A stretch of DNA of 63,966 bases, the filler included, from Pelomyxa schiedti (lineage: Eukaryota > Protista > Evosea): the NCBI GenBank assembly GCA_020536535.1. It is 11 parts of 11 records of this genome, joined end to end, with 100 filler letters (N's around TTAATTAATTAA, not from the genome) between each part and the next. Parts side by side here need not be neighbours in the genome. Positions count along the whole stretch, not along the records: positions 11,427 to 41,723 come from JAHLWZ010000042.1; 10 more parts are not named here. The stretch is one strand, 5' to 3'. The position numbers were made by a program, and so were the translations under genes. This document shows, piece after piece, positions 3,247-41,723 of the stretch (position 1 is its first letter; every line of letters starts with the position of its first letter). The notes below the pieces were generated by a model that ran no database searches, had not been told where the DNA came from, and saw only the letters and a list, made by a program, of their open reading frames with translations.

Positions 3247-3366
3247 CAGAAAATACATAAAAAGAACATTTCATTTTCGTGTGAACGGATAGAACCGTAT
3301 CTACACTTTCTATTTACACAGTTGCACAGTCAATAATCAAGGTCATAGGTCATTGGCCCAGGCGGG

Positions 3367-12728: not shown

Positions 12729-12840
12729 TGTTACTGTATTAACGACAAGTGAATCTGTTGAGATTCTCCGGGGGCGAACCGAGCGATGCGTCAGGTTTAC
12801 TTTGTTGGCTATTTGGACACACTGGTCATTTATTGATGGA

Positions 12841-14501: not shown

Positions 14502-14641
14502 TGACCCACTTGTGAGTGCCTTTTATTTCCCTGGCGTGATCCTCGAGCTTCAGTGGTTCCTGTTGGAAAAAAATTTGCCTCAAAACAAACTTGTTTTTTT
14601 TGATCAATTCATGTAAGAGATGGTGAATTGTTGGGTATTCT

Positions 14642-17044: not shown

Positions 17045-17210
17045 CGCTCCCCAGGTCCAAGGTGTTCGATTTTGTGGATTTTATTGATTTCTTTTCGGCG
17101 GCTATTTTGGCCGTTGCGCGAAGACCCAAACTTCGGCGGTAGTGTTTCCTTCATCGAATCCTCAGATGGTTGCTCTGTTCCGAGGTCTCCTATGCCCCAG
17201 CTGTTGAGCA

Positions 17211-17276
17211 TCAACTATGTTCGCTCTCACTCTCACTCTCGCTCCCACTCCGGCTGCGGCTTCGGCTTCTGCTTCT

Positions 17277-17314
<38 letters not shown>

Positions 17315-20300: not shown

Positions 20301-23300
20301 CAAGTCTTTGTTAAAAAGGTCCCAAACAGTAAGCCTGCCTGATTGCTGAGAGAACCCAGCCAATTTATCCCTTGCTGGGGATATTGCAAACAAGGAAATA
20401 TCAGGCCCAAGGTTGGTTGCAGGGTGTGGTGAGCAAATCAGGTTCCCTGTAGTTTCTGCTGGGGACATCTCAAAGAAGGTGGATGTCCGAGACACAGTTC
20501 CCAACAGAGATGACTTGATGAAGAAATGACCAAGACACCCAATAATGGAAAACGATGGTTCAAGGACTGTTCTTGTTTCTCGTGATGAAGAAGGCTTGGG
20601 GGAAGGAAGAGAAAAAATATCTGTTTCACAAACCTCGGTTCCTTCCACCTCCTTTGATATTGCAAGAATAGTGGCATCCCCAGAGAAACATATATTTTTA
20701 ATACTACAGACTGGTGTTCCTCCAGTGGGTTTTGGGAATCTAAGATTGAGAGTGGTATTTGTGGGGATGTCCAAAACCAGAAGAGGAATATCTCCACTGA
20801 CAACCAGGCATATCTTTTCTCCATTTGGAGAGAATTTAGATTGGCTGCCCTGTACTTTAGGACCAATTTCAAGTAGTTCTTGGTCCTCTGAAGTGAGATA
20901 ACATAATAATGGGGAGGCTTTGTTGTGTGGGCAAGCACACAACCGCTTTCCATCTACAGTCACATCAACACAAGCAAGCCTCACACCAAAATCAAAGACA
21001 ACCCTCTCATTAAAGGTCACGCCTGTCATGTTAGCATATGACAGGTCGGCTCCGCATATCCACACCTGTGGCATTTTGCAGTCACTGAGGTCAGCCTTCC
21101 CCAGGTTGGCGGCTCCAAATATGCCACCCGTGAGGTCAGCACCGTTGATGTGAATGTACCGCAAATCAGCATTTGAGAAGTTGTGTTTGCCCTTGACCAG
21201 TAGCATCATTGCTGTGGTGGCAGCCCTGTCAGCTCTATGTGATTCAGTCGCGCCTGCCGCGTCACGGCTTGTCCTCTTGGAGTTCTCAATGAGGAGAAGG
21301 AGTGCCTTTCGTAGACTGAATGTGTCTTTATTATTGCCATGTTGTGCTTGAACAGATTCATCCCTAAACATCATCTCCAGCAAAAAGCTTACAACATCAG
21401 GAACTTTGACAAGAGTGGACTGATTAAGAACAAGATCACAGGGAGATTTCACAACCTTTGTTCTTTGTTCATTCTCTTTGGCAGCTTGCATTTTCCTCAG
21501 CCGTCGTCGAAGGTGAATCACAACACCCAGACTTGGCCTGAAGTTGCTTTTGGTTATTGTGCTTTCAATCTCTTCTTTTTCTTCATCTAGTCCAAGTAGT
21601 TTAGTGACAAGTGCACAATGGAGGACTGTAGCGGAAGCCTCTTTCGCGCTCTGCCTCTGTGATTCCATGATATGCAGAATATCTTCAGTTACTTTGTCCT
21701 TGTCAATCATGCAGTGCTGATGGCAGTGAGCCTCCTGGATTTTTGTAATGAGGTCAGCAAGATGCCTCCTTCCATTTGTGACGGAGAGTATTTTATCCAG
21801 TAGCTCCCTAAGTCTCTCAAAATTTTTCTCTCCTAACCAAGAAACAGAGGTATGTGTCAGTGCCTCACTGACAATTTCGCACTTAGGATCCAAGTCCAGA
21901 GCACACTTATTGCACAGGTTGAAGTTGCATATGTAACAATGCCAACCATCATCTTTAGGATTCCCACAGCAACCTACCTTTCGACAGGAATCACACTGCC
22001 AGTGATACAAACGTGCCTTCTTCCAGTCAAGGTGAAATGGGGCAAGGTGTTCCAGCGTGTGCTTATGGACAACAACATTGGCAAGTTCCAGAGGAGGAAG
22101 GCGCATTGCAAGGAGTTCCCTCTTGTGCTCCTGGAAGACCTTCCACATTTCTGCAAAGTCACTTTCATTATCAGCGATAAGTGGACCAATCATGGTTTTG
22201 AAAAACTTAGTGGGTTCATCATCTTTTCCACTTGACAAACGACTGGGCTGATATTTGGCACTTATTTCCTCAATAATTGCACATACAAATTGATGTGTAG
22301 GGCTATGATAGCGCCTCTGTGTGAGCTTAATTGTCTCCCTGCACTTCACTTTGGGGAAGTTTGAAAACGGCATGCTGACACAGAGCTGTACCTCCTTGTA
22401 AATCTTGTAGGCAATGAAATATTCCTGAAGGGACTTGTGCAAGAACATGAAAGTGTTGCCACCCTTTCTCTGGATTGGGCAGCCAGAGAGCACCAGCTGC
22501 GTGCTCCGATTCGTTGGGCTGAAGAACCTCTCAAGTGGGTTGGTTTGGTCAATCACCTCGACACCCTGGCTGTTTGTGGTCCAAACAGGACTGTACTGGA
22601 CCGCTGTCACCCCCTTGCCAAACATGAAGATGGAAAGATTCTCAGAGAAGGTTCTGAAGTCCTCAACGATGTCCCCACCAACCTGGAAGTTGAACTTGAC
22701 TTGCTCCGCATCGTCGGTAATGTGCTGTGCTGTGGTGCATTGGGCCATCCTCTCAGGTGTGATTTTGGACTTTTGCCTCTGGAACCACTGTTCCACAAAC
22801 CTGTCATAAAGCTCAAGCCTCGTCAGTTTGCTGTCATCAAACCTCCTCTTCGTTTTATCCGGCTCCAGCCGGTCAACAAGTGTTGGGAGAATCTCCATGA
22901 ACATCTTTAATATCAGTGGGGTCCTCACTAGATCCTCTACCCCTTTCAGAAGTTCCTTGTGCTGATAGAACAGTTCTGCACTCCATTCACCTCCAAACTG
23001 AGCATACTTCTTGACATATGCCTTTATCTTCTGCCGAGTGAAGGGCTCAATGTACCAACACAGCACCTCTGGAGCTGCTTCCGCCTCAGCGATACCTCCC
23101 CATTCAGCTGATGGCTGTGTCTGCACCCCCTTTTTCATTGACTTCCCAATTTTTCCCTGAGCACCAGGGAGGCAACAGAAGTTTTGGAAGTAATCTGACC
23201 CGATTTTCTCAGGCCTGCTGGATACCAGCACCTGTGCATACCTCCATTCCTCGAGTTTGTTTGCCCGACAGATGTTGACACCAACCTCGAGGGTGACTTC

Positions 23301-26105
23301 GTCATATCCATCAAGAATGAACAGGACCCGCTTGCTTGCCTTGATTTCATCAATGTTGTTCTGGGAGAACCCAAGCCCAACGAAAGTCTTCTCGAAAATG
23401 TTTTTTCCTGGATTCTTGATGGTTGCGAGTGAGATGAACATTGGGATCACCTTGCAACTCTCATAGGACTCCCACAGAACCTTCTCCAAGAAGTGCCCAA
23501 ACGTGGACTTTCCTGTTCCACCAGACCCAACAAGCACCAGAGTCTTGGTTGAAGGGAAAGGCACCGCTGAAGTGGAGGACAGTGCGGTTGTTGAGGAGGA
23601 TGTGTGGGAGCTGCCACATTGTGCAGCTGTCATATTGAGTTCAAGATTCAAGAATTTCCGGAGCAGAATCTCCTTCAACGGCTGTGCCACTTTGTCAAGG
23701 GTACTCTCCCGGCAATCAGGTTCAACATATGTCTTGAACAGAGTTTCAAGCTGTGGATCTTCCAATGTACGATTCCTGAGGTCCATAACTTGATCATCAA
23801 CCGAGTCATTGAGGGTTGTCAAAATCTCGGCCTTGGATTTGATGAATAGCTCGGCAGTGCTCAAAGTCTCTTCCACTGGTGTGGTCTGTGGCTTTGTCAG
23901 TGGGAGCAACATCTTGAACTGTAAAATCGGGTGGATGTTGGCAATATCTCCAGGTGCCAAGGGGCCAGCAGGGACTGGATTTTTTCGCATGTAAATGAGG
24001 AAGTTAGTTTTAAAAGGATTCAGGAGCCCAATGGCCTCAGCAGAGAAATTTGCCTTGCTCAAATTCAGCTTGTCATCAAAGCAAGAGATGACATCGGCTG
24101 TCGGTTGTTCCTTCTGAGTCTGCAGAGGGGGAAGAGTTGAAATGTCAATGAAATCTGGCGCTCCAGAGGGCCTGGGCACCACATACAACCAGAGCTCCTG
24201 ATTGGAGATGTAAGCCAGAGTTGGTCGGACCATTTCGGGAGTGGCTCTGTCCAACTTACGTCTCTGTGGGAAACTGGCAGTTCCAAAGTTGATCCTGTGT
24301 TTGAGGTCTCTGTTTCTCTGGCTTTTTGCCTCTTCTCCCTGAATGAACTTCATCACTTCACCCAAAATTTGCCATGCAGTGTTTCCAATTGGAGCCGGCA
24401 TCGTGGAATATTCTCGCAGTTTTCTGATGACCACCATCATCAGCCCGACTTCCGAGTTGAAGAAATTCATCAGTGCACTGTCACGGTGATCTTCTCCAAT
24501 CAGAATTCCCTTGAGCTGAGCCAGTGCCCATTTTTTCATCTCAATATTCTCAGGTGGCTCTGATCTGATCACGTTGTCAAGGAGATTGACATATCCCAGG
24601 CTGAAATCATGCTCTCCTTCCAACACTGCATTGAGTTGGCCTTTGAGCTCAACAGCTTTCCTTTTTCTCCTCTCTGCGACATTGGAAACTCCCTCCTTTG
24701 GATCCAGCAAATCAAGTTTTTCGGCTGTGGCACCAGAGGTGGCTTTGGAATGAGAAGCTGCTTTCTCTTCCTCTGCTGCCAAGTCGGCGTCCTTGCTCAA
24801 AGAATCAGCGTGACGGAGACCGAATTTCCTGGACTCAGAGTATATCTGTTGAATGGTGTCCTTCAGTCTCTCCTGTTCCTCCGGTTCCAACGCTTTCATC
24901 TCCTTCGCGCCGACAGTGAGCTGCCAGAGCATCAAGTCAATGAAAAACAGCAAGTCCATCCACAATTCATTGTGAATGTCAGCGAAGCACTCCTTGAGCT
25001 CGGAGAAGTAGTTGAATACCTCTCGTGTATCGTATTGCATGGCAATATTGGCCATCGCACCGACTGCCATGTATGCATGCCCGAGTCGAACAACAACTTC
25101 CTTCAGAGGATAGCCGTTGTCTTGAATTCGTTGTACATTCTGCTTGGCAACTTCTGCCTCGGCGGCGACGTAACACTCGAGGCTCTTGTAGTTGGCGTAT
25201 CTGTCTTTCAGAGCCTGAAGTGTTCCAAGTGACTTCTTCTTGATCTGTTCACTAAGGCCCTTGACACCTGATGCCCACATCGCACGGAGAAACTTATTGA
25301 CAACCCTGAGTATCTGGAACACCCTCTCTGCACTTTGCTGCTGTGCCTGCAAAATCTCGAGCTTCCCAATGAGCATCCGATAAGTCGAAACCAGGTCTTC
25401 AACTGGAATGTGACGGGAAGAGCACTGGAACAGAACCTCAGCCAGGCCCTCAATCATAGGCACATCAAAGAACGTGTTCTGGTCGATTGTGTTGACAAGT
25501 CCCGACACGAGCATCTGAACCACTTCGCTGTCGTCAACCCTTGCAAGCTGCACGATTTCATCGATCAGGGCAGGAGTCTTGCTCGGCGTTGACATGAAGT
25601 TGTCGATCATCTTGATTGCCAGGCTCTGAAGAACCCGTTGACCGGCTTTGTCCGTGAAAATGAGAGGGCACCTGAAGTGGCGGTCTGCATCGGCGTCGTC
25701 CAGAGTGGCTTTTGAGCCTTGAATTGCCACAGAAGTCGACTCTGGAAGGTACTCTGAGCAGAACGCCTTTGTGGAATCTGCGATTCTTTGGAGCAGTCTT
25801 CTTCCCTGGGGCGCCCTTTCTGCAGTTGCAACAGGTGATGCACCTGTTGTCAACTTGTGCTGAGGAGTCATGAAAGTCTGGAGCTTCTCCAATCTGTCCC
25901 TCACGAGCGCTTCCTTGTCGTAGGAGAGCATCGCCACGAGTTGAGCTCCAGTGTTTACGTTTTGAACTCGCTTTGCGCGAGACTCCTGAAGCGCAACTGG
26001 AACTGCCGTGCTGGGCATGGCCTGTGCGCTCTCATCATTGTGGGATGATGTGGATTCACTGGTGTGATGATTACGATGACTCGAGGCGTCGGCTGTGGGC
26101 ATCAT
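17211..26105 (-). CDS. Giant NLR-like STAND protein (about 2950 aa): ARM-like, NACHT NTPase, DC1-like insert, pentapeptide repeats, degenerate WD40/propeller, DC1 zinc fingers, RS tail
   Basis: Walker A GSGGTGKST (about 23502-23528), Walker B ILDGYDE (about 23300-23320), VSSRPE, TPLILK, FLHKSLQEYF, ADLRYIHINGADLTGGIFGAANLGKADLSD. A predicted 51-nt intron at 18266-18316 joins ORF 18282-26183 in frame to ORF 17211-18251. First ATG is 26105. Confidence 0.88.
17246..17400 (-). repeat. Hexanucleotide repeat encoding an (RS)n tract
   Basis: Minus-strand AGC-(CGA/CGG/CGT/AGA) units. The variation is synonymous only in the Ser-Arg frame. Confidence 0.85.
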
Positions 26106-26303
26106 CGTTTTGCTTCTCTTTGGTTGTTCTTTGAAACGACAACTCTGTGATCGGACCAACTTTTTCTCACTCTTTCGTAACAAGTTTCTCGAAAAAACAA
26201 TCTCGGGATTTCGCTTTAGTGGGATGTAAACACAACAAATGGAATACGTAAGTTGTAGGTGGGAACGTTTGGGAGAGAGCTGACCATGAGTGATATTGAG
26301 TCA

Positions 26304-26470
26304 TGTTGTACAACACACAGCTCCAACGCACCCGACATACGGTTTTTTCGGCCAGAGGCAGGAATCGCACCGATTTCGCCAAAGCAGATTATGTTGGGTC
26401 TGTGGACCCACAATTAGTCATCATCACCTCAGCAGGAGAGTGACAAAGTTGGTTTTGGGCATGAAGGACT
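26304..26470 (-). pseudogene. Orphan upstream region and first codons of a TRIM-like paralog (MSGALELC..., ATG 26338)
   Basis: Shares CCTTCATGCCCAAAACCAACTTT, TAATCTGCT.TGGCGAAAT and AAAAAACCGTATGTCGGGT.CGTTGGAGCTGTG with 28695-28810. Homology ends near 26304. Confidence 0.75.
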
Positions 26471-26502
26471 TTTACACAGTGTTTTGGCTTTTTTTTTGTT
26501 CG

Positions 26503-27037
26503 TTAATTGGTTGTGACTGTGAGCAGACCATAAATCTCGAATCCAGCTATCAAGAGGTAGTTGCAGTTACTTGAGTCGAGACCAGTCATCACCACACGAA
26601 ACACACTGAACGACGAGGTTGGAGTGGGTGGAGCAGCATCCCACGACCCAACTCCATGTGATCCAACTATTGTCTTGTCATTTGAATGCCTCGTGATGGT
26701 TGTCCATGTTGTGCCGTCGTTTGATCCCCTCAGCTCCCAGTTCCGAATGTAGTCACTGTCGTTGCCGTCGTGCCTGATTGAGTACTTTGACGGCCTCACT
26801 GACCCGCCACATGGTCTCAGGTCCACCTGCCACCAACTGTTCGCCACGTTGGTGGTGTTGTTGCCGCCGTTGTGGTCACGTTCGAGTGCGTTCTGTGGTG
26901 CCCCTTCGTTGGAACAGGACCACGAGGCGATGACGAGGCCCGAGTTGTGGGGGTTGACATAATTGGGAGTGTGGTTGCCGGGGTTGTGCCTTGGATCGGG
27001 AGTGGTTCCCAACCACCACATGACACCTTGATGGTCC
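26503..27037 (-). CDS. C-terminal discoidin/F5-8C-like (HECTD1-type galactose-binding fold) exon of a TRIM-like paralog; 5' part in gap
   Basis: GVMWWLGT...NSWWQVDL...PSKYSIRH...IRNWELRGSNDG..WTTITRH...FRVVMTG...IAGFEIYG. About 90% aa identity to 28855-29373. Confidence 0.8.
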
Positions 27038-27137
27038 NNNNNNNNNNNNNNNNNNNNNNNNNNNNNNNNNNNNNNNNNNNNNNNNNNNNNNNNNNNNNNN
27101 NNNNNNNNNNNNNNNNNNNNNNNNNNNNNNNNNNNNN

Positions 27138-28727
27138 GGTCCCAAGCCACCACATGATTCCTTGTTGGTCCCAGTTGCTGCTGAATGTGAACTCACGTGT
27201 GACAACTGGCGGTCAATTGTTAGTTAGGGCTGAAATAACCAAAATAAAAATACAGAGTGACACTGACTCGGGAGGACAAAAGAAAAACATAGTACACAGA
27301 CACACTGACATACTGATTGGAGTCGAGAGAGTAGCGAATGGGGAGCTCCTTCCGTGGATTCCGTTCGATTCTGCCCTCACGCTCACCATGTATGTGGTTC
27401 CCATTGACAGGCCTCCAACTGTGATCCTGGGGTCACTCCCGCAATGGAGCTCCTGTTGCTCTTGTTGTTGTTTCCTGGACACAAAAACAGTGTATCCTGT
27501 CAGGATGGCTGCCTTTGTTGGTGGAGGATCCCATGAGAGAATGAGGGACGTTGCTGTTGATTGGCACAAGCGTGGCTGCCCCGGTCTCCCAATCGCTTCC
27601 TCTATTTTGTGGTTTGTTTTTATGTTTCATGGCGGCGAGTCGGCGATACCCACCAGGAGGGAGAATGACACCCAGTGATGATATTGCTTTAAGGCATGCG
27701 GTTTTGTCAAGAATTGTGAAAACTCCATCATTTTCGCACGGCCGGAGCTTCTCTGAGTTGTACAGAGCACCCTCTACTATCTTTGTTTTGATTTGTGAGT
27801 TGTGGGGTTTTTGTTGAAGAGTAAACAAACCAACCTGCAGTGTTTCTGAGGACTGTTTTCGAGCTCTCATCACAGATTCGTTCGAGGAAGAGTTCATGGC
27901 AGCCAATGAATATGAGCAAGCACCCTCAAGACGTTCGGAGATTGTTGTCAACACGGATTTCTGTTGATTCAGTCTTTCAACTGGAGTTATAATGATTTGT
28001 TGGCACAATCATCTTTAGGTTATCTTTCACCTGTTTTTGCACAAATATTTGAAGACTGTTGGTTCAGTAAGTCAATCCTGTTTCTCAAGAGATTCTGCAA
28101 CTCTGCTCCAACCTTGTTCACTTCCGCCTGAAATGGGGCACGTTTCTGATAGTTGTGGGTAACAAAGAAATTGAGACTTAAAGATTTTGAGAAAGTGTGC
28201 CATTCAACCTGTTCAACAGATGCAATGAGGTTCTCCAGCTGTTGCACTGCCACATCAACCTTGCTCTTTTGGTCGAGGCACCTCTTGGACAAAGCTGCAA
28301 TCTGGTCTGTAGATGCCACAGAGTCGGAACCTAGGGGCCTGTTGGTCTCCATAGTTCCTTTCCACACTGTGATACTGCCACCTGTGTAACGGCCGAGCAC
28401 TTGGCGCACTTCACTTCAACTGTGTCTGGAAGCTGCAGACGAAAACTCACCTGGGTAACACAGAGTGACCAAAAAAAAAAAACATCGAACGTAGAACGCA
28501 CAGCTGCTTCATCACTTCCCTGTTTCAACAGTGCCAAAGAATACTGCTTTGCCACGCAACTTACAACACATTCGCGACAAATCCGGTCTCCACACTTCAT
28601 TGAGTCAGTCCGTGAAGTGAAAAAACAGATGCAAAAAAACGAAGGGAACAGGCAAACGGACCACAGGAGGATCCTTGAAATCACAGAGACAACATGTTGT
28701 ACAGCACAGCTCCAACGTACCCGACAT
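27138..28727 (-). pseudogene. TRIM-like paralog lacking B-boxes (RING, coiled coil, FN3, start of discoidin domain), apparent frameshift
   Basis: MSGTLELCCTTC..CGDRICREC..VKCAKC. The reading frame shifts near 28350 relative to the paralog (ETNR lies in another frame). Coiled coil and FN3 (LSWDPP..GYTV..YMVSVRAES) follow. Confidence 0.6.
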
Positions 28728-28854
28728 ACGGTTTTTTTTTGGGAAGGCAGGAAATTTCGCCACAGCAGATTAGTAATCAAAAAAGTTGGTTTTGGGCATG
28801 AAGGCGGACCAACCTCGGACGGAACTGGCACAACACACATAACTTTTTTGTTCA

Positions 28855-31646
28855 TTAATTGGTTGTGACTGTGAGCAAACCATAAATCTCGAATCCGGCT
28901 ATCAAGAGGTTGTTGCTTTTACTTGAGTCGAGACCAGTCATCACCACACGAAACACACTGAACGACGAGGTTGGAGTGGGTGGAGCAGCATCCCACGACC
29001 CAACTCCGAATTTTGCATCGATTGTCTGGTCATTTGCATGCCTCGTGATGGTTGTCCATGTTGTGCCATCGTTTGATCCCCTCAGCTCCCAGTTCCGAAT
29101 GTAGTCAGTGCCGTTGCTGTCGTGCCTGATTGAGTACTTTGACGGCCTCACTGACCCGCCACATGGTCTCAGGTCCACCTGCCACCAACTGTTCGCCTCA
29201 TTGGTGGTGTAGTTGCCGCCGTTGTGGTCACGTTCGAGTGCGTTCTGTGGTGCCCCACAGTTGGTACTGGACCACGAGGCGATGACGAGGCCGGAGCTGT
29301 GGGGGTTGACATAATTGGGAGTGTGGTTGCCGGGGTTGTGCCTTGGATCGGGAGTGGTTCCCAACCACCACATGACACCTTGATGGTCCCAGTTGCTGCT
29401 GAACGTGAACTCGAGCCTGGTTTCTGTGGGCCAATTTTAGTTTGATGCACAATGCCACGATGAAGAAAGCCATCTCATTGCAAAAAAAAAAAAAAAAAAA
29501 GAAGTTGATGAGCGATGAATAACAAACAACAGTCACACATAACACATACAACACACTCACCGTTTGTGGTTGAGAGCGCCTTGAAGGGGGAGTTCCTTCC
29601 ATGGATCCCATTTGACTCGGCCCTCACACTCACCATGTATGTGGTTCCCTTCGTCAGCCCACCAACTGTGATCCTGGGGTCACTCCCGCATTGGTGTTGT
29701 TGTGGTTCTTCTTCTTGTTGGTTGTTGTTGTTGCGTTGTTCTTCCTGCTGCTGTTGCCTGGACACAAACACCGTGTATCCTGTCACTCTGTTTCTTGTTG
29801 CTTTTGTTGGTGGTGGTGGAGGAGGAGGGTCCCATGAGAGAGTGAGGGATGTTGGGCTCGCTTGGCATATCTTAGGTTGCCCTGGTGCACCGATTGCTTC
29901 TTCTGTCGGCATTATGTCAGTGTTTGTTTGGTGGAATGCAGTCTTTCTTTGATCGCGTGGTGAGTGAACACACACCAGGAGGGAGAATGACACCCAGTGA
30001 TGATATTGCTTCACGGCATGCTGTTTTGTCAAGGATTGAGAAAATTTCGTCACGTTCACACGGCTCGAGGTTCTCTGAATTGGATGACACACGCTCCACT
30101 GTCTTTGTGTTTTGCAGGGTTGTGGTTTTTTTGTTTCATTCGAGTGTAAAAGGCAACTTACCTGCAGTGTTTCTGAGGAATGTTTTTGGGCACTGATCAC
30201 ATAAACGTTGGAAGAAGAGTTCAATGCAGACAACGAACAGGAGGAAGCACCCTCAAGATGCTCAGAAATTGTTGTCAACATGGATTTCTGACGATTCAGT
30301 CTTTCAACTGGACATTGTTGTGTGTTTTATTTTATTTTATTTTGTTTTGTTTTGTTAGTTCGGAGCACCCACCACCCTCTCTTTCAGTTTCAAACCTGTT
30401 TTTTCGCAAATATTCGAAGACTGTTGGTTCAGGAAGTCAATCCTGTTTCTCAAGAGATCCTGCAACTCTGCTCCAACCTTGTTCACTTCAGCTTGAAATG
30501 CTGTGTGTTTCTGACCAATGAAAATGGGTGGGTAATTAAATGGTTTGTGTTTACGGTTTGTGTGGAATATAAATAAATGTTCAGGCTTCCAAAATGGCTT
30601 CAACCTGTGTGACAGATGCGATTACGTTCTCCAACTGTCGCACTGCCGCATCGACCTTGTTCTTTTGGTTCCGGCATCTCTTGGACAAGTTTTGCAAGTC
30701 TGATTTGCTGGCAGCAATTTGGTCTGAAAGTTCAAGCAGTTTATGTCCCTGTATCACAACCAGTGGTGAGAGGTTTAAACAGCCAAAGAAGTTTCACCTG
30801 ATGTGAAGTGACCGCGCAGACGGAGCACATTAAGGTTGTGCAGTTCACACAGTACAACTCGATTTCTTTCTTGGGGTGTTTGGGACAATTGCCTGTTTTG
30901 AGATTATGATGAGCAGCTCAAAACCTTTTGAAGGGGTGTGCCTACTGAGCACTTCCGGAATTGCTTGCGTCAAAGGAAGCTTTGGATGAGTTGCAAAAAT
31001 CGGTCTTCTGTGAGCTCCAACCCAACATGTGTCACACAGAGACCCACAGACAGAACAGTGAGCAGTAGCCGGCTGCCCACAGTCCACACACACCACTGAA
31101 CCCCCTGTTTTATGTGTTAGGTGTGGTGGATACACTTCGCAATTTCGGAAAAAAACCAGTGGCATGTTCCCTCTGATGGAGAATTTCAACAAGGTGCCGG
31201 TTGGTCTCGAGAGCCTTGGCGCCTCGTGACACCGACGCTGGTGTCACCATTGAGCACTTGACACACTTCACTTCAACTGTGTCTGGAGGCTGCTGCATAC
31301 AGAACAAAAAAAAAAAAAAAAAAAGAGAGGGAATTGATGGTACTCAGTAAAAAATAAATGCCCGAAAGAGGAGTGTTTTTCGTGTTGTCACTCACCAAAA
31401 CAGATTTGTCATCACCCAATTTCGACAGGGCGAGAGCACATTGAGTTGCCATGCAACTGACAACGCACCCACGACACATGCTGTCCCCGCACTATTTATT
31501 GGTCGTTGGTCAAACAAACCCCGGACGTGGGAGAAGAAAAAAGCAAGAAACACCTTTAAAACCACGGGATCAACGAAAACGTTGAGACAGTAAGGGCAGC
31601 ACAGTCCCGTCGACTCACTCAACGACGTCGCCGTAGAACCTGCCAT
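28855..31646 (-). CDS. TRIM/RBCC-like E3 ligase: RING, B-box1, B-box2, coiled coil, FN3, discoidin/F5-8C-like domain; complete, multi-exon
   Basis: RING CPYC..CGDSMCRGC..CVKC. B-box1 CVDC..AHCSVC..LCDTCWVGAH..H. B-box2 CPKH..LYCVNC..MCSVC...H|GH. Then coiled coil, FN3 and discoidin exon. Splice sites are consistent in phase where checked. Confidence 0.85.
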
Positions 31647-32224
31647 GCAAAAAATAACAGAAAAACAACGAAAAACAACAAGTCGAATTTGGCGTTAGAA
31701 AGTTTTAGCGATCCGGAGCGGAAAGCCATGGCCGCTTAGAGAGAGAATAGGGAACAATAGAGTAGAGAGAAAAGAGGGTGATTTTACGTGCCCTTGTGAG
31801 ACATGAGGAGGTTTGTAGGCCGTTTCAGAACCCACATCCAGCAGACCTAAATCACACCCACCCAAACCGGACCAGATCGGCGAAAGTTCTATCATCAGTC
31901 GCAGTGACACACACTGGACAGAACTATCCTAAAGGATTAGAAGTTATAGAAATAAGAGAGAACACTTTTGTTCGCTTGCCGACTTTCGTTTCGGACATCT
32001 ACGAGGGCTTGTCTTACAGGTTTAGTCTCGAAATCATCTTTGAGAGGAAAACGGGTCGATTCGAGTAGATTTTTGTGCCGTGATGGTGCCTCGCTTTGTT
32101 TTGGTTTTTTCCACTTTGAGTTTTAATCTCGACTGGCAACTGTAAGGTTGAAAGAAAACAATTGGATAAGTCACAATGTGAGGGTTTTCCCTGCATGATG
32201 GGGGTTCCATACAACTCTGAAATT

Positions 32225-32988
32225 TTAGAACTTTTTATGCTTTTTGTGCACGTGTTTGGTGACGGAAATCTAGACTGGGTGTTAAACGAACGTCTCCAGG
32301 AAGCAACATACCTCATCATCTACAAGCTTGTAAGAATAAGTTGTCAGTACAGTGCCTTCAACTGAAAGAACCATAAAAGTTGGTACAGCGTCCCTAGTTT
32401 ATTTGACTCTACAATTTAATAGGGTTTTTCTACCTGTTCGTTTCATTGGAAGTGCCAGTAGCAGTACCGGGGTTTAGGAACAGTTTTCCACTCTTCTCAA
32501 TTAAATGCGTTTGTGTATGTCCTTTGCGGTTTCAGTAAAAAAACGAAATATTGAACAGCAAGCAGAATTGGACAGAAACCTGTTATTACAACATCAGAGT
32601 CTGTCATCCTCTGTATATACTCCAAAGCCTCAGTGCCCCTATATTCGTCCTGGTGAGCATGGCAAATGCCAACTGTGAATTTCTCAATATCCACAACTTT
32701 GACGTCCGGGTAACCACTTTGCAGCTACTTGACACTTAATTCCACCACAAAAAGAAATCAAGATAAAAAACAAAAAAAGAGGAAAAGTACATCGTCGCAG
32801 TCACCTCCAACAATGTCTACACGCTCTGCGAGAGTTCGAAAATACTCCTCTACTTCTTTCGAGCACAGATTGCCAGTGCATATCACCCATTGCATTTTAT
32901 TGGGAGTCAAAAGATCCAGGAACTTCTTGGGCAACGACGCAGCTCGCGTCGGAATGTAAAGGTCTCCAATGACCAACACCAACACCAT
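32225..32988 (-). CDS. VPS29: Retromer subunit VPS29 (metallophosphoesterase fold)
   Basis: MVLVLVIGDLYIPTRAASLPKKFLDLLTPNKMQWVICTGNLC, ICHAHQ, LFLNPGTATG, PTFMVL, TYSYKLVDDE. Confidence 0.87.
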
Positions 32989-33164
32989 CGTTTCGGCAGT
33001 TAAAATTATTGATCTCGAGGATAACGGTTCGGTTCCAGTGTTGAGGTCGAGTTGGCGTCCAACCATAAGGCCACGTACACTGCAATCGGACTCGAACTCT
33101 TGAGCAGTTTTTTGCTTGAGACCCTCACAGATAGTTGAGATTGTAAATTATTACAGCAAGGAAG

Positions 33165-36100
33165 ATGGCTCACGATGGTACGAGGAGGGCGGTGTTACAG
33201 GGCGAGGAAGGGCAACCCATAATGGAGACCTGTGCCGCCGGCGCCCCTCCGTCGACGCCGCCGCACCACACGCCGCAACAGCAAGGGACGACACAGGACA
33301 GCTCCGCCGACTACGACGACAACGACGGCGGGACCATGGACCGCGGGGAACAAGGCGGCTCCGACGAGGACAGCGACTGCGTGATCGTCGGCGTCGCGGT
33401 TCCCCTGCCCGCCCCGGGCGACGGCGACGCCGACGAAGCAGACGATGAGGCGGACGGCGCCGCGCCAACCGCAGGCGGCGGCATAAGAAGATCGAGGGGG
33501 CGCAGGAGGCCCGGGGCACATGTTAAAAGGGAGCCGCGGGAGGAGGACGTGGAGCGGGAGAACCAGGGCAGCGGGGAGGAAGAGGAAGCCGAAGAAAGCG
33601 AGGTGGCGGCGGGGGAGGGGGAGGCAGAAGCAGAGGGAGAGGGAGAGGGGGGGAAGGAGCCCAGCGAGGAGGAACAGGGGGACGAGCAGGGAATACAGCG
33701 GGACGAGGATGACGGTACTGGCGGTGGTGACCAAGCGGAGACAGAGGTGATCGAGGTGGACGACGACGACGCCGGTGTCGGTGGTGGTGATAATGGCGAC
33801 GAGGAGGGAGCGAATGGCTGTGATGAGGATGAGGATGGGGATGGGGATGGGGATGACGGAGTGGCGAAAATCGATTGTGGGAATGGAGAGGATGATGATA
33901 CCACGGGAACGGGAACGAGAGGAAGGGGTGACGATGACGGAGAGAACGATGACTATGAAGATCAAAGGAAACACCGGACCGAAAAGAGGAGAAGAACCCC
34001 TGAGAAGCCGTCGAATGAAGGTTCTGGCCCTTGCTCTACATCCACTACTGCGTCCACTTGCATAAGGAACCAGAAAAATAAACCGGTGGAAGAGGAATCT
34101 GGCATTACAAAACTTTTGGCACTTTTTGATCAAGAGAGGGAGAAAAATGAGATGAAATTACTGCTAAAGGAAGTTGTCAAATTAAAGCAGAAGCTCAAAA
34201 TGAAGAAATTGGAAGAGAAAAAGAAAGTTTGTTCATGTGGTCATGCTACAACATGTGCATTAGAATCACAGTCCGTTCATAATGAGACATCCACTTCCCA
34301 CAAAAAGCCAAACCGCACAGCTTTCACACTTGAAGAAGATCTTTGCATTCTCAAGTTCGTTGAAGACAACCCAAACATGGGGACTCGAGGAAATGCAATG
34401 TGGAGACAGCTTGCAACTCAAGTTTATTTTTTATCTTTTGTCCTTTTTCCCTACTCCCACTGATATTGTATTTTGTCTTGTCGATTGTCATATGACTTGT
34501 TTTGTGGTTCCATCTTTTTTTTTTTTGTTCAGTCTGCCTCAGGTTACCACACATACATGGCAGAGCTTGCGTAGTCGCTATTTGCACATTAAGGACAAAA
34601 CAGAAGCGGATTTGAGGAAAGATCATACCCCAATTGCAAAGCTCCCCAACTGTTTAAATATGAGACCAATAGAGTCATTCCTTCATGATCCTCAGAATTC
34701 ATCTATACAAGATAGGAACTCATTTTTCCCAACAAATCAACATTTTCTGCATACCCCTGCTATCGACGTCGATGATTCGTGTTTTCCCAATGTACCTTCG
34801 GCCCCACCCTCACCTACCACAGCAACATCTTCAGTGCGAACTCAAACTCCAGTACGTGCTCACCTTTTCCCAGGTCAATCTCAAATGTCACATCCCTATC
34901 CACAGTTGCCTGTGAGCCAACAGCATCCACTATACCACATTGCACAGTGTGACCGACGCACTGCCCCAACGCCAGTACTTCAGCCCCAAATGCAATCAAC
35001 CAAACCTCAAAATATGGATGCACCACAACTTCATTTATCACGTCCCCCAGAAATACCACTATCACAGCAGCAGGTGGCAGTGGACCCTCAGCCTCCACCA
35101 GTACCTCAATTACAACCTCCACCGCCACTCCATCCACCATCACAGGTGCAGTCGCCGCCGTACCCACGGCCTGCATCACAACAGCAGTCCCCGATACAAG
35201 GGTCACCACAACCTCAGCCACCCCCAATGCAACAACAACAAGCACAGTTGCTGTCACGACCTCCACAGTCCCAACCATACTTACAACCCGTACCACAATT
35301 ACAGCAACCACCTCAACTGCCACGGTTGTTGCAACCCTCATCACAGCCGCAACAAACGCCACAGACTGAACCACTGCCACAAATAGAGCGACAACACAAG
35401 ACACATATATCACAACAACTTCCGCAACCCCGAACACATCTAGAACAACAATCACGGCCACCGCAACCAGCAGAGCCACAACAAATTGATTTACCCCTCA
35501 CCTCTCCAGAGACAGTTCAATACATTCCTTCTAATCCACACCTACCGTCACTACTACAAGAGCCTGTTGCACAACAGCCAGAGCCTATTTCTTCAACAAC
35601 ATCATGTACAAATACCTACTCCCAGACTGAAACTTCAAATTTACCCAAATCTGTACATAAGGGACGAACACAGCAAAACCAAATTACTCCCTTGAAAAGC
35701 AAAGAAATTCCGCAACCAAAGCCACCAAAGCTCACAAATCCCAACAAATCCTCTGCAACCAAAAGGCCGGCTACACAAACGACAGCTGCAGCAGTAGGTA
35801 TTGTCACATCCCCTGGCAAAGTCAAGTCAGAGCAGGCTACTACACACAGCCGAAGTTCGGGTTTTACATCCAATGCCCTGAGCCAAGTCATCAACGGCAC
35901 GGACAAGGATTTAAAAGAAGTTGCAGGGGCACTTCTGGCAACCGGTTCAGTGCATGGAGCAATAACATTACTGAATGGAGAAGGTTTCCTTTCACTCCCC
36001 TACCTACCACTTGAAACTAACCGGCCCCAACAGACCCTGGTGTAAAAGTATGGAAATCTTCCGAGAACGTATGTTCTAATTTTCTTTCCCCCTTCCGTTT

Positions 36101-36289
36101 TTCACGCACTGAACTCTCCTAATACAGAGGGCCCTGCTCAAGAGAGACCTACCTCGAAGTGAAGAAATTTTCAAAGCTGTGGGTGTTGCTGCATTCCGTG
36201 CACGGCTTGACTTCCTCAGAATTCCAGTCAAAGATTTCCCGTTCCTGCAGGACCAAGTACCCCCAGCAGAAGTCATCTCATTACTTTAG
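33165..36289 (+). CDS. RAP1: RAP1/TERF2IP-like protein (Rap1-type Myb domain plus RCT-like C-terminus)
   Basis: RTAFTLEEDLCILKFV..RGNAMWRQLATQ|VTTHTWQSLRSRYL. C-terminal ALLATGSVHGAITLL..VWKSSE|..ALL...GVAAFRARLDFL. Long acidic and Q/P-rich linkers. Confidence 0.72.
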
Positions 36290-36573
36290 TGCACAACAAC
36301 CCAACCTGGGGTTTTTTTTCTCAAGCACTGTTCTGTGCCGAAGGACTGTACAATTGGCAAAAAAAGAGTTAAACAACTCTAATCTGAGTTGGCACTAATT
36401 ACCTGCACATCATTTATAAGCTTTTGCTGGCCACACCAGTCAATATTCAAATAAAAAAGATAGAAGTTCTTGTGGAGTATGTTTTTTTGCTTGTAGTCCC
36501 TTGCCACCATCACATCTGATGGCTCAAGGGAACTGGCAATCCATCCTCCTATTTATGAATTCCCAAACGAACG

Positions 36574-37869
36574 ATGGCTGGCGCTTCAGCCCCTCTGAAC
36601 AGGGTAGACGTGTGCAGCCCGCTTACTCACGGAGATATTGACAGCAGAACGGTACCAGCATCCGCGACGGTTTGTGCGGTGACGTTGGACCAATCAATAG
36701 TATCTGCTCAACGGGTATGTATTTACCCTCTCCATAGCAAACAAACATTAGGGCACCCACTGCCCACGACACACTCCCCACTCCAACTAATTATTGTTGT
36801 AGGAATGTGCGTCGTTTATTGCTGAAGCGGACAATGTGGAGAGAAAATTACAGGCTCAACTGAGAACCAGAATCGAGCTGCTGAAAAAAGAAGCACAGAA
36901 TATTTGTACTGAGACAGGTTTCGTAGCATCTCATATAACGACAACCTAACTCACAAATACCTCATCTCCAGTTGAAAGACTCAATAGACAGAAATTCATA
37001 TCCGAAACACTTTCGGATCAAGATTCCTCCTGCATACAGTCTGCAATGAATTCTGCATTAGATTCTTATGGAAATGCTCAAAGCCAGAACATAGATTCAC
37101 TTCAAGTACACAAATATCTCCAACTCCTTTTAGTATTCACAGGAAAATCAGACACGGGACACAGAGAATCTCAAGGCGTGCGAGTACGGTTTATTACTCC
37201 TCAACAGCACTGCATGTCACCGCGCAATTTCATCTCTGAGTTGCGGTGTGAAAAAAGAAAATCATCCTCCATCATGTTTCTAAACCAAGAACAGGAGTCA
37301 CACGGGAATTCACATGCAACTGCAACTGGGACCGGCGAGGAATCATGTGGTGGTTGGGAACCACCCCGGACCCAAGGCATCACCCTTTACAACACACCCC
37401 GAATCACATCAACCCGCACACATCCGGCCTCGTCATCGCTTCATGGTCCGGAACATGCAGCGGTTCACCTCAAAGCACACTTGATCGCGACTGCAACATC
37501 CCCAATTACACTGCACACGAGCCGAACAGTTGGTGGCAGGTGGACCTGAGGCCATGTGGAGGATCAGTGAGACCATCAAAGTACTCAATCAGGCACAGCA
37601 GGAACACGGGCAACTTTTTGAGGAACTGGGAGCTGAGGGGATCAAACGACGGCACAGCTTGGACAACCCTCACAAGACACACAAACGATCAAACAATCAA
37701 CAGACCACTTGGAGTTGGCACATGGAATGTCCCCCAGACATCAACACCATCAACTGAACCATCGTTCAGTATCTTTCGTGTGATAATGACTGGACCCTGC
37801 TCAAGTGGCTGCCTTCACCTTGTAATTGCGGGCTTTGAAATTTATGGTTTGCTCACAATCGCGCTGTAA
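36574..37869 (+). CDS. TRIM-family paralog reduced to coiled coil plus discoidin-like domain (no RING, B-box or FN3 seen)
   Basis: VERLNRQKF..AMNS..LQ and ENLKACE..TACHRAISSL align with the coiled coil of the minus-strand copies. The last exon runs directly into VTREFT..GIMWWLGT...IAGFEIYG. Confidence 0.7.
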
Positions 37870-37923
37870 ATATAGCAGTAAAAAAATCAAATCGTCAAAA
37901 ACAACTCCTTTTATTCCTACATA

Positions 37924-39784
37924 TTACAGCCTTAGAGGATAGGGAAGACTGAAGTGGAATGCAAGTTCTATGATGAATTGAAGTGTAGGTAGTGGTATGA
38001 TGCTGAATACACCACCCTTCTTCCATGAGAGGAACAACGGCTTTAGTTGCCTGAAAGTAGGGAACCTTCCCTTGATGAAGAAGACAGTCTGGGCCTTTTC
38101 ACAATCCACAACATAAACATCACCTCTCGGCGTCATCCATAGACCCATTGGGGTTACAAGGGATGGGTGGGTGAAAAACTCGGTTGCTTTGGTGGCTGTT
38201 GTGTTTCAGTGAGGGGTTTGTGTGTCTTGAATTGGGATTTGTACCTCTGTTGAAAGACATAACAACGGAGTACTTTGGGTCGGTGAGGAAAAACATGTTT
38301 CCGGAGCTATCTACTTTGATTCCTGTGGGCAACATTGGATGGGAGTTGCATTCGAAGCGTGTTATGGTAGAGACCATTCCTGGAAAGATAGTTAGCTTAG
38401 TGAAAGTTCTTTATTGGTAAACCGTCTTTAATTCTCCTTATGCTTGATGAAATAGAATCGGCAACATAAATCGCCCCCGTCGAGTCAACGCAAACGCCGC
38501 GAGGAAGATTGAACTGAGCACTGGAGCACTCGCCATCCTGGGAGCCAGCCTTGCTGCTGCCAGCAATGGTTGTCACAGTGCCTTTTAGGAAGCTAAATCA
38601 GTAACAAAATGGAAACTGCCTCACAAGAGAGATACCATCCAGAGTAACTCTTCGTATTCTGTGATTTTCAGAATCAGACACTACAAGTGTCCTAGTCGAC
38701 TTGTCAAATACAATTCCCCACGGGCCTCTGAATAATGCCTTGGGGCCTCTCCCATCAGCATAGCCACCCGAAGGTGAACCAGCAAGTACAGTCACATTCC
38801 CTTTTTAAATATCCTCAGAAACAAAAAAACCCCAGCGAAGCACAAATCAAAATAGACACATGAACACCAACTCAGCAACCAAGTATTTGACTTGACACAT
38901 AACCTACAAGGCACACACACTGCCCACACACCTTCCATAGACACTCTCCTTACACGGGACGATCCCTGCTCCGTCACATAAACAATCCCCTCAGGGTCCA
39001 CAGCCAAAGCAATGGGGTTCCAGAAGGACGCGTCGTGCGGGCCGCCGTCCGACGTCCCCTCCATGGCCCCGACCGCGGCGCCGACGCCGCCCCACCGCGT
39101 CGCGGTCATCTCGCCCCCGCGCATGGACGCCCGCATGGCCTCGGTCAGCATCACCGGGCCCATCCACAGCACCGCGTGCATCGCCCAGTCGACCACCAGC
39201 ACGCGGCCGGGCTGCCCCTGGTCCGCGCCTCCGCCGCCGCCGCCGCCGCCGCCGGGGCCGCGCGGCTCGTCCAGGCACAGGTCGTAGGGCTGCACCAGGC
39301 ACGTGGGGCTGTAGTACCTGTGGAACACGTGGGGCGCCGCCGACATGACGTAGTCGACCTGGCGCCCGCCGCGCCGCATGGGCTCCCTGTCGGCGCCGTC
39401 GTCGTCGTCGTCGATCTCCATGCTGGACCCCGAGTGGTCCGCCGCGGCGCCGCCCCACGTAGTCACCACCGGCGCCGTGGGTGTTATTGTGGCGGCGACG
39501 GAAGTACTAGCAGTTGTGGTGGTGGTTGCTGATGCTGCTGCTGTTGATGGAGGTGGTGTGGATGCTGCCGGGGCCGAGGGGGAGGCCAGGGTCTCGATGA
39601 CGTGGACGGAGCCGTCGTCGGCCGTCACGGTCACGGTGGCTGTCGGGGGCGGGGACGGCGTCCGCTTGCGTGGGGACGTCTTGCTGGCCGGGGGCGGCGA
39701 CGGCGTGCGGTTGCGCGGCGACGTCTTGCCCGACGACGAGGTCGGCTTGGACGAGAACATGAACGCAGCGAGCCTGCCCCTCAT
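37924..39784 (-). CDS. NHL-repeat beta-propeller protein
   Basis: DGGPHDASFWNPIALAVDPEGIVYVTEQGSSRVRRV, LAGSPSGGYADGRGPKALFRGPWGIVFD, DSENHRIRRV, AQFNLPRGVCVD. Confidence 0.82.
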
Positions 39785-39916
39785 TTTTTTTTGTTCGACG
39801 ATGTCACTGTTCTAGAACTACAACAACGGTTTATGTTCCAAAAGAAACAACAAGTCAGTTTTTTTAGTGGAACTCGCTGAACGAACTTCAGGAGGGTTGT
39901 TGGGTGTACTGAAGGT

Positions 39917-40153
39917 TTAAAGTAGATGGTTGGTTGCTGGAGAGAGTCGTTCGGAGAGTTGTTCAAAATGTCCAGTCACTGTTTTGATGGTCGACAAGCA
40001 GGCTTGTGAAGTTAGTGGAAACGAGCAAATCAAAAAAAAAGTCTACCGGCTTTCGTCATCGCCAGTTCTCCCTTTGTGGTAGCAAGCTCTTCCTTTGTTC
40101 TTTCATGTGCCTCTTTTTCCTTTTGCAATTCGGTCCTAGTGTATTCCAACACG
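39917..40153 (-). CDS. 3' fragment of a coiled-coil protein (5' in gap)
   Basis: ELQKEKEAHERTKEELATTKGELAMTKA, intron, short last exon to TAA at 39917-39919. Confidence 0.4.
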
Positions 40154-40253
40154 NNNNNNNNNNNNNNNNNNNNNNNNNNNNNNNNNNNNNNNNNNNNNNN
40201 NNNNNNNNNNNNNNNNNNNNNNNNNNNNNNNNNNNNNNNNNNNNNNNNNNNNN

Positions 40254-41723
40254 CCTGGTTTCTGTGGGCCAATTTTAGTTCGATGACAATGAAGCAAGCA
40301 TCTCATTGCAAAAAAAAAAAAAAAAAAAGTTGATGAGCAATGAATAACAAACAACAGTCACACATAACACATACAACACAACACACTCACCGTTTGGGGT
40401 TGAGAGCGCCTTGAAGGGGGAGTTCCTTCCGTGGATTCCATTTGACTCTGCCCTCACACTCACCATGTATGTGGTTCCCTTCGTCAGCCCACCAACTGTG
40501 ATCCTGGGGTCACTCCCGCATTGGTGTTGTTGTTGCTGTTGTGCTTCTTCTTGTTGGTTGTTGTTGTGGTCGTGTTGTTCTTCCTGCTGTTGTTGCCTGG
40601 ACACAAACACTGTGTATCCTGTCACTCTGTTTATTGTTGCTTTTGTTGGTGGAGGAGCAGGAGGGTCCCAGGAGAGAGTGAGGGATGTTGGGCTCGCTTG
40701 GCATATCTTAGGTTGCCCTGGTGTACCGATTGCTTCTTCTGTCGGCATTATGTCAGTGTTTGTTTGGTGGAATGCAGTCTTTCTTTGATTGCATGGTGAG
40801 TGAACACACACCAGGAGGGAGAATGACACCCAGTGATGATATTGCTTCACGGCATGCTGTTTTGTCAAGGATTGTGAAAATTTCGTCACGTTCACACGGC
40901 TCGAGGTTCTCTGAATTGGATGAAACACGCTCCACTGTCTTTGTGTTTTGTGGGGTTGTGGTTTTTTGTTTCATTCAAGTGTAAAAAGCAACTTACCTGC
41001 AGTGTTTCTGAGGAATGTTTTTGGGCACTGATCACATAAACGTTGGAAGAAGAGTTCATTGCAGATAACGAACAGGAGGAAGCACCCTCAAGATGCTCAG
41101 AAATTGTTGTCAACATGGATTTCTGCCGATTCAGTCTTTCAACTGGACATTGTTGTGTGTTTTATTTTATTTTATTTTGTTTTGTTAGTTCGGAGCACCC
41201 ACCACCCTCTCTTTCAGTTTCAAACCTGTTTTTTCGCAAATATTCGAAGACTGTTGGTTCAGGAAGTCAATCCTGTTTCTCAAGAGATTCTGCAACTCTG
41301 CTCCAACCTTGTTCACTTCAGCTTGGAATGCTGTGTGTTTCTGACAATGGGTGGGTAATCAATGGTTTGTTTCCGGTTTGTGGAATATAAATGTTCAGGC
41401 TTCCAAAATGGCTTCAACCTGTGTGACAGATGCAATTACATTCTCCAACTGTTGCACTGCCACATCGACCTTGTTCTTTTGGTTCCGGCATCTCTTGGAC
41501 AAGTTTTGCAAGTCTGATTTGCTGGCAGCAATTTGGTCCGAAAGTTCAAGCAGTTTATGTCCCTGTATCACAACCAGTGGTGAGAGGTTTAAACAGCCAA
41601 AGAGTTTCACCTGATGTGAAGTGACCGCGCAGACGGAGCACATTAAGGTTGTGCAGTTCACACAGTACAACTCGATTTCTTTCTTGGGGTGTTTGGGACA
41701 ATTGCCTGTTTTGAGATTATGAT
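40254..41723 (-). CDS. TRIM-like paralog, partial (B-box2, coiled coil, FN3), both ends in gaps
   Basis: Near-identical to 29408-30910 including introns. Ends at the acceptor of the discoidin exon (CCCACAG|AAACCAGG). Confidence 0.8.

Follow-up and report, generated by a model that had tools for sequence, protein, structure and literature searches.

A TRIM-like gene of the archamoeba Pelomyxa schiedti with a discoidin-like domain at its C terminus

An eleven-exon gene and its predicted modules

Pelomyxa schiedti is an anaerobic archamoeba (Amoebozoa) (PMC8887013), and the gene described here is predicted to encode a protein of the tripartite motif (TRIM) type that ends in a discoidin-like domain. 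The window, that is, the whole stretch of DNA analysed, is 63,966 nucleotides long with filler included; within it, the piece that we studied spans positions 11427..41723 (30,297 bases) and comes from JAHLWZ010000042.1 of assembly GCA_020536535.1. By combining a three-frame translation with a direct reading of the DNA, we traced the focal gene on the minus strand from an ATG at 31646 to a stop codon at 28855, in 11 exons. The 10 introns are all of the GT..AG type, measure 49-137 nucleotides and are consistent in phase, which leaves a reading frame of 2022 nucleotides, or 673 codons and the stop. The deposited annotation places a 672-residue gene on the same strand and over exactly the same span (locus 2282..5073, which with an offset of 26573 gives 28855..31646), and lists Pfam matches to zf-B_box, fn3 and, weakly, F5_F8_type_C. 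The difference of one residue is probably due to a CAGCAG tandem acceptor of exon 3, which could begin 3 nucleotides later. Genes of P. schiedti were predicted using Augustus, and single-cell transcriptomes served to refine them through PASA and EVM; the introns reported for this species number 7.4 per gene and are GT-AG in 98% of cases (PMC8887013). The focal locus is one real gene of P. schiedti.

Much of the reading of the N-terminal modules was aided by a paralog on another contig, P0008 (KAH3743390.1, Pelo_15223, 703 residues), which is colinear with all 11 focal exons at 42-84% identity per exon. Exon 1 (31554..31646, minus strand, as for all the exons that follow) contributes the start codon together with the first zinc pair of the RING, C-P-Y-C, and aligns to P0008 residues 1-38, while exon 2 (31396..31491) contains the RING core C-G-D-S-M-C-R-G-C and shares 73% identity with residues 39-60. 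The last zinc pair, C-V-K-C, lies in exon 3 (31157..31292), which also aligns to P0008 and continues as a linker to the first B-box. Read directly from these three exons, the RING has the spacing C-x2-C-x11-C-x-D-x2-C-x2-C-x32-C-x2-C, with all eight metal positions filled and an Asp as the fourth zinc ligand, where TRIM72 has a His. Pfam is blind to this domain in the single exons 1-3, none of which yields a RING match, because the RING is split over all three. When P0008 was compared by HMMER with all PDB sequences, its RING aligned to the RINGs of TRIM72, TRIM31, TRIM34, TRIM21 and TRIM5, and the best matches overall were TRIM72 (8e-10, covering the RING and the B-box-coiled coil region), TRIM28 (7e-8) and TRIM3 (8e-6).

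Two B-boxes of different type follow. Exon 4 (30946..31104), 69% identical to P0008 residues 146-196, matches zf-B_box at 29.0 bits (E 1.2e-6, threshold 24.1) and displays the type 1 ligand spacing C-x2-C-x7-C-x2-C-x3-C-x2-C-x4-H-x7-H. Exon 5 (30798..30892), 84% identical to residues 199-229, matches the same family at 38.1 bits (E 1.7e-9, threshold 24.1); together with exon 6 (30605..30748), whose second residue is the last His, it displays the type 2 spacing C-x2-H-x7-C-x2-C-x4-C-x2-C-x4-H. The tandem B-boxes of P0008 align to the tandem B-box structure of MID1 (2jun) with an E-value of 1.3e-3. A predicted coiled coil starts in the remainder of exon 6, occupies exon 7 (30396..30510) and ends in exon 8 (30162..30307), where it is succeeded by a Ser-rich linker; exons 7 and 8 both align to P0008. 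HMMER carries this part of the comparison as well, since residues 141-359 of P0008 align to TRIM28 92-316 and residues 196-359 to TRIM3 108-271, with TRIM72 aligning likewise. The AlphaFold2 (AF2) model of P0008 has an unbroken helix at 247-344, where the predicted local distance difference test score (pLDDT) is only 50-60, and then two shorter helices.

Between the coiled coil and the FN3 domain, exon 9 (29976..30102) encodes a conserved helical linker, F-x-x-L-D ... A-I-S-S-L-G-V-I. The motif is kept in P0008, in the Pelomyxa proteins P0154 and P0018 and in the Mastigella eilhardi protein P0074, and weakly in two proteins with filamin repeats, P0155 and P0093. By eye the linker looks like a COS box. 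We dropped this assignment: at E<=10, the COS family PF18568 matched neither exon 9 nor the equivalent regions of P0008, P0154, P0074 and P0018, and a profile of the linker region gave no match at that level to PDB sequences, which include that of the MID1 COS box. Exon 10 (29561..29902) encodes the FN3 domain, interrupted by a low-complexity insert rich in Gln, Glu and Asn, and matches fn3 at 44.8 bits (E 1.4e-11, threshold 25).

Judged by these profile matches and ligand spacings, the predicted protein contains B-boxes and an FN3 domain, and probably also a RING and a coiled coil. The initial annotation had proposed, for a protist gene, the order RING, B-box1, B-box2, coiled coil and FN3, with a discoidin/F5-8C-like domain in the place of SPRY. 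The host is indeed a protist, P. schiedti, and the same order emerges from the exon reading, from the colinearity with P0008 and from Pfam.

The C-terminal discoidin-like domain

The last exon, exon 11 (28855..29423), encodes the discoidin or F5/8C-like (galactose-binding-like) domain and the stop codon, and it contains the motif string that the initial annotation had quoted for the terminal domain. Pfam assigns it to F5_F8_type_C (PF00754; 30.1 bits, E 6.1e-7, threshold 28.2) and to F5_F8_type_C_2 (PF22633; 30.1 bits, E 7.6e-7, threshold 27.8). This is the position of PRY/SPRY (B30.2) in class-I TRIMs, and here Pfam finds F5_F8_type_C instead, while the fold search returns CBM32 and discoidin domains and no B30.2. 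The AF2 model of the domain, built on a 50-sequence alignment, is confident (pLDDT 97.3; predicted template modelling score, pTM, 0.92) and adopts a galactose-binding-like β-sandwich, or jelly-roll. In a Foldseek search of the PDB, it matched CBM32 modules (4a41, 2v72), the GH92 entry 7nsn, fucolectins, SUN2, APC10 and the discoidin domain of muskelin (4pqq), all with a probability of 1.0 and with template modelling (TM) scores by target of up to 0.77. A profile of the exon 11 family retrieved from the PDB sequences the F5/8C-like modules of GH92 proteins (1e-14), neuropilin b1 (1.5e-7) and the C domains of factor VIII. Sequence profiles and the structural model thus both predict that the exon 11 domain is a member of the F5/8 type C group, with a galactose-binding-like fold.

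The ESM Atlas offers as closest shapes (TM 0.81-0.89) a set of parabasalid proteins annotated as F5/8C or Sad1_UNC, of which some also have BACK, along with At2g30600, a BTB/POZ protein of plants; a language-model feature search with the domain agrees with these shape matches (score 0.97). An exhaustive HMMER search of exon 11 against 1.84 billion representatives found 2964 proteins at E<=1e-3, P0008 among them. Among the closest 101 representatives of up to 700 residues, Pfam matched F5_F8_type_C in 85, Sad1_UNC in 18, BACK in seven, BTB in five, fn3 in four, Filamin in two and zf-B_box in one. Three proteins, P0105, P0135 and Pellita catalonica P0140, combine BTB-BACK with a domain of the exon 11 type, and two Pelomyxa relatives bear source names of the HECT class, namely P0018 ('HECT-domain protein') and P0171 ('E3 ubiquitin-protein ligase HECTD1'). 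The initial annotation had likened the terminal domain to a HECTD1-type fold. Its discoidin-like character is borne out by Pfam, AF2 and Foldseek, while the HECTD1 label is supported by the source names of P0171 and P0018 only: no animal HECTD1 or BTBD9 chain is among the sequence or fold matches of the domain in the PDB, and the nearest structural relatives tested are the parabasalid F5/8C proteins and At2g30600.

The domain resembles CBM32 and discoidin domains such as neuropilin b1, the factor VIII C domains and the GH92 and GH89 modules in its fold and, at the profile level, in its sequence. However, these are extracellular or secreted binders of glycans or lipids, whereas the focal domain would be part of a presumably cytosolic ligase. 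It also possesses an N-terminal extension, F-T-F-x4-D-x2-G-x3-W-L-G-T, which is common only to the eukaryotic subtype associated with E3 ligases and is not a feature of CBM32/discoidin. The BTB-BACK proteins (the plant At2g30600 type, and P0140, P0105 and P0135) share this C-terminal subtype with 34-36% identity over ~175 residues, and in them, too, the domain sits on a scaffold of the E3-ligase type; the At2g30600 cluster has an Atlas TM of 0.84 to the exon 11 domain. In contrast to the focal protein, they carry BTB-BACK (a CUL3 adaptor) as the ligase-side module in place of RING, B-boxes and coiled coil, and they have no FN3. The subtype therefore recurs on E3-ligase scaffolds, demonstrated for BTB-BACK and by source names only for HECT. 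Because it is found on BTB-BACK and HECTD1-named proteins as well, the exon 11 domain looks like a recognition module of several E3 classes.

Relatives and local copies

Besides P0008, the genome holds a second paralog, P0154 (Pelo_2659), which is truncated at its N terminus. Outside Pelomyxa, two Trinity transcripts of the archamoeba Mastigella eilhardi, P0074 and P0151, encode a RING (CGDSVC), both B-boxes, a coiled coil, FN3 and the C-terminal domain in one open reading frame (ORF), and since they are derived from RNA, the modules are joined in one message in a relative. In both transcripts, the ORF runs on for ~170-200 residues past the discoidin-like domain (residues ~745-917/953) in an Arg/Gln/His-rich tail, which looks like a read-through or frameshift in Trinity isoforms and not a real extension.

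Among the relatives found, only those from Pelomyxa and Mastigella have the full series of RING, B-box1, B-box2, coiled coil, FN3 and C-terminal domain. A word-indexed protein search was insensitive, with three to five proteins each for P0008, the family profile and the domain region, and its blanks are therefore no argument for absence of the layout elsewhere. Three ESM Atlas clusters (51-67 members, ~295 residues) combine a B-box with F5_8C or Sad1_UNC. Two further proteins, P0155 (from an ENA metagenome) and P0093 (from a Logan run), are of a filamin type; like the focal protein, they have a RING or B-box1, followed by B-box2, a coiled coil and the same domain subtype. Unlike it, they carry a filamin repeat where the focal gene has FN3, and the RING of P0155 has the canonical C-x-H, while P0093 has no RING and has stop codons upstream of its start. 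When the domain was placed in a tree, Mastigella and the Pelomyxa copies came out as one supported group (96/81). The filamin-type proteins that combine a RING and B-box with a coiled coil (RBCC) fall outside it, in a part of the tree that is not resolved, and so a single origin of the fusion between RBCC and the domain is neither shown nor excluded.

At least four copies of the family, the focal gene included, were found in the studied piece by tblastn. Copy B (Pelo_643, P0166; 26506..28636, minus strand) lies directly downstream of the focal gene and comprises a RING, coiled coil, FN3 and discoidin-like domain, with a gap of N's (27038-27137) inside it, at which the deposited model P0166 (327 residues) stops early. 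It has no B-boxes: at 28313..28352 (minus strand), the alignment passes from P0008 residue 127, in the RING, to residue 243, in the coiled coil, over 39 nucleotides, so short a distance that both B-boxes must have been cleanly deleted rather than hidden in a gap. Its RING has the same CGDS.C variant as the focal gene and Mastigella P0074. Copy C (40365..41703, minus strand) was traced by tblastn from B-box2 through FN3, being cut upstream by the edge of the piece and bounded downstream by the gap at 40154-40253. Copy D (Pelo_647, P0006, 352 residues; 36574..37869, plus strand) consists of a coiled-coil remnant and the discoidin-like domain, and lacks RING, B-box and FN3. The initial annotation had spoken of an expanded family, which is apt in that the gene is locally duplicated, yet the size of the family is modest: the piece contains four copies, and the rest of the genome adds a handful.

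The focal gene and copy B are unevenly similar. Their last exons (28844..29389 and 26492..27037, both on the minus strand) share 94.5% nucleotide identity, against 68% for the region from coiled coil to FN3, which points to gene conversion, or to an exchange of exons, confined to the discoidin-like exon. The two last exons differ by 18 nonsynonymous and six synonymous codons, with a ratio of nonsynonymous to synonymous rates (omega) of 0.87, and all 18 replacements lie outside regular strands and helices. This pattern was considered as a sign of diversifying selection on the head domain and rejected as evidence for it, because the synonymous changes cluster in the same stretches as the replacements and omega is ~0.9 for coil and 0.8 for structured parts; patchy gene conversion or relaxed constraint would explain it as well as selection. 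A comparison with copy D gives a dN/dS of 0.23 for the last exon of the focal gene, a sign of purifying selection.

Three stretches of exactly 100 N interrupt the piece (12127-12226, 27038-27137 and 40154-40253). The assembly was scaffolded with P_RNA_scaffolder (PMC8887013), and these runs are probably joins of unspecified size; the one at 40154-40253 may hide the last exon of copy C.

Proposed function, wider readings and neighbouring genes

The arrangement of modules makes it likely, in our judgement, that the focal protein is a TRIM-type RING E3 ligase that dimerizes and in which the FN3 and discoidin-like domains form a head that selects the target. By analogy with solved animal TRIMs, from which we infer its ligase activity, dimerization and mode of target choice, the coiled coil would pair two chains in antiparallel fashion, the RING at the N terminus, a Cys7-Asp variant, would recruit a ubiquitin-loaded E2, and the tandem B-boxes would modulate assembly. 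The target, bound by the head of FN3 and discoidin/F5-8C-like domain, might be a protein or a glycan. That the C-terminal head would be the selecting part is suggested by its location, since it occupies the PRY/SPRY position of class-I TRIMs.

Several points weigh against this reading. The sequence searches were carried out with single exons or with P0008 as a proxy, and the focal gene is known here from genome sequence, the transcript evidence being that of its relative M. eilhardi. The full-length AF2 model of P0008, made from a 5-sequence alignment, is poor (pLDDT 49), was left out of the fold searches and leaves the tripartite fold a prediction from sequence. Finally, the RING itself is not canonical, with an Asp in place of the His and a 32-residue loop before the last Cys pair; there is no Arg or Lys after its last Cys, and the RING of P0008 scores below the Pfam threshold (zf-C3HC4_4, 26.1 bits against 30).

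The Asp, the missing basic residue and the low score of the RING would also fit a noncatalytic TRIM-like scaffold or lectin, an oligomeric adaptor with a degenerate RING whose discoidin-like domain binds the ligand. Ligase activity is absent from some animal TRIM-like proteins too, and the losses of N-terminal modules among the relatives (the B-boxes in copy B; RING, B-boxes and FN3 in copy D; the RING in P0093) mean that the C-terminal half can exist without the ligase half. Asp is, however, an accepted zinc ligand in some active RINGs, and the focal RING fills eight of eight metal-ligand positions and aligns to active TRIM RINGs. Moreover, Pelomyxa and Mastigella have kept the CGDS.C variant in common, which points to constraint on the RING, and we consider a noncatalytic scaffold unlikely. 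It could also be imagined that the gene model joins two adjacent genes, one for RBCC and one for FN3-discoidin, fused by the prediction, as FN3 and the domain do occur without RBCC in Mastigella P0076 (278 residues, marked as a complete ORF) and in Pelomyxa P0018. Yet the intron between exons 9 and 10 is only 73 nucleotides long with matching phases, the same junction is found in P0008, P0154, P0165 and the RNA-derived Mastigella P0074, and transcriptome data went, through PASA and EVM, into refining the deposited gene models (PMC8887013), all of which makes such an artefact very improbable.

Still harder to credit is that the gene is a contaminant or was recently transferred from an animal. 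The amoeba was grown in a polyxenic, polyeukaryotic culture (PMC8887013), and by language-model features, a lead only, the clusters nearest to P0008 are the animal proteins MID1, TRIM46, TRIM67 and TRIM42 (score 0.8). But the similarity to animal TRIMs is distant, with a best PDB E-value of 8e-10 and no SPRY; the closest relatives are Pelomyxa genes and Mastigella transcripts with the same unusual Asp-RING; and ten introns fit the density of 7.4 per gene in P. schiedti (PMC8887013).

The likely TRIM-type ligase invites comparison with animal class-I and class-III TRIMs (MID1/TRIM18, TRIM9/67, TRIM36 and TRIM46; TRIM42), with which it shares the predicted order RING, B-box1, B-box2, coiled coil and FN3. 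It differs from them in having no detected COS box, an F5/8C-like domain instead of PRY/SPRY, an Asp in the RING and an amoebozoan host. The likeness to class I put forward by the initial annotation consequently stands for the FN3 domain after the coiled coil, but not for COS, for which neither Pfam nor the PDB profile search gave a match at E<=10, nor for SPRY; on both of these counts, we call the protein TRIM-like and not a class-I member.

The initial annotation also remarked that TRIMs are mainly animal proteins, which accords with the survey of Marin 2012 (PMC3503706), where all TRIM subfamilies are animal-specific except subfamily A (MATH, TRIM37-like). Against that account, in which the MATH-type TRIM37-like proteins alone are found outside animals, the focal gene sets a full predicted tripartite motif with tandem B-boxes and FN3 in an amoebozoan. 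The class-I/III layout would then either have its origin question pushed back to the base of Amorphea or be a clean case of convergent assembly. The library of papers searched yielded none on B-box or TRIM proteins in Archamoebae and likewise nothing relevant for Amoebozoa and Capsaspora. The gene, whose architecture the initial annotation had called unfamiliar as an expanded family, is not new to the databases: it is in GenBank with its Pfam hits, and Atlas clusters combine B-box with F5_8C or Sad1_UNC. As the gene was already annotated, without comment, the novelty lies in how it is read, not in its sequence.

For ubiquitin ligases more widely, one eukaryotic F5/8C-like subtype appears on two E3 scaffolds, BTB-BACK and RING/TRIM, and on HECT by source names only. 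This makes the exon 11 domain a candidate for a general recognition module of these enzymes that awaits characterisation. At 188 residues it should be easily expressed, and a confident model already exists, which makes it suitable for ligand finding.

At 18282..26183 (minus strand), ~300 bases from the TRIM-like cluster, lies a single intronless ORF of 2633 residues in an otherwise intron-rich genome, with Pfam matches to ARM_5 (E 6e-15) and NACHT (24.7 bits, threshold 26.7), pentapeptide repeats and a C-terminal Thioredoxin_8-like stretch; from its sequence, we classify it as a predicted STAND-type NTPase. Pelomyxa harbours dense prokaryotic endosymbionts. A bolder reading, which we regard as speculative and rather improbable, is that complete TRIM ligases of archamoebae, whether descended from a pre-animal ancestor of the class-I/III TRIMs in Amorphea or convergent, take part in a system of cell-autonomous surveillance in Pelomyxa. 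If this were true, a tandemly duplicating and module-shuffling cluster with a lectin-like head, beside a giant NACHT-type NTPase, would attach ubiquitin to glycan-bearing targets (symbionts, prey or damaged vacuoles), in a role similar to that of the expanded TRIM families in animal immunity.

Four other genes or ORFs were noted in the piece. Between copies D and C, at 37924..39784 (minus strand), an annotated gene of 527 residues has weak matches to the β-propeller families NHL, SGL and TEN_NHL, a Pro/Ser/Thr/Ala-rich N-terminal stretch and no RBCC; NHL repeats are another classic C-terminal module of TRIMs. Adjacent to the large NTPase-like ORF, at 17211..18251 (minus strand), an ORF of 346 residues contains a C1_2 domain (DC1-type, Cys/His-rich; E 5e-11), and its N-terminal part runs through a long SR/RS dipeptide repeat, the opposite strand of which reads as GS/GF repeats. 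The remaining two are annotated neighbours of the focal gene, one at 32225..33066 (minus strand) encoding 211 residues with a Metallophos_2 match, and the other at 33165..36289 (plus strand) encoding 964 residues with a Myb_Rap1 match and very acidic as well as Pro/Gln-rich low-complexity stretches.

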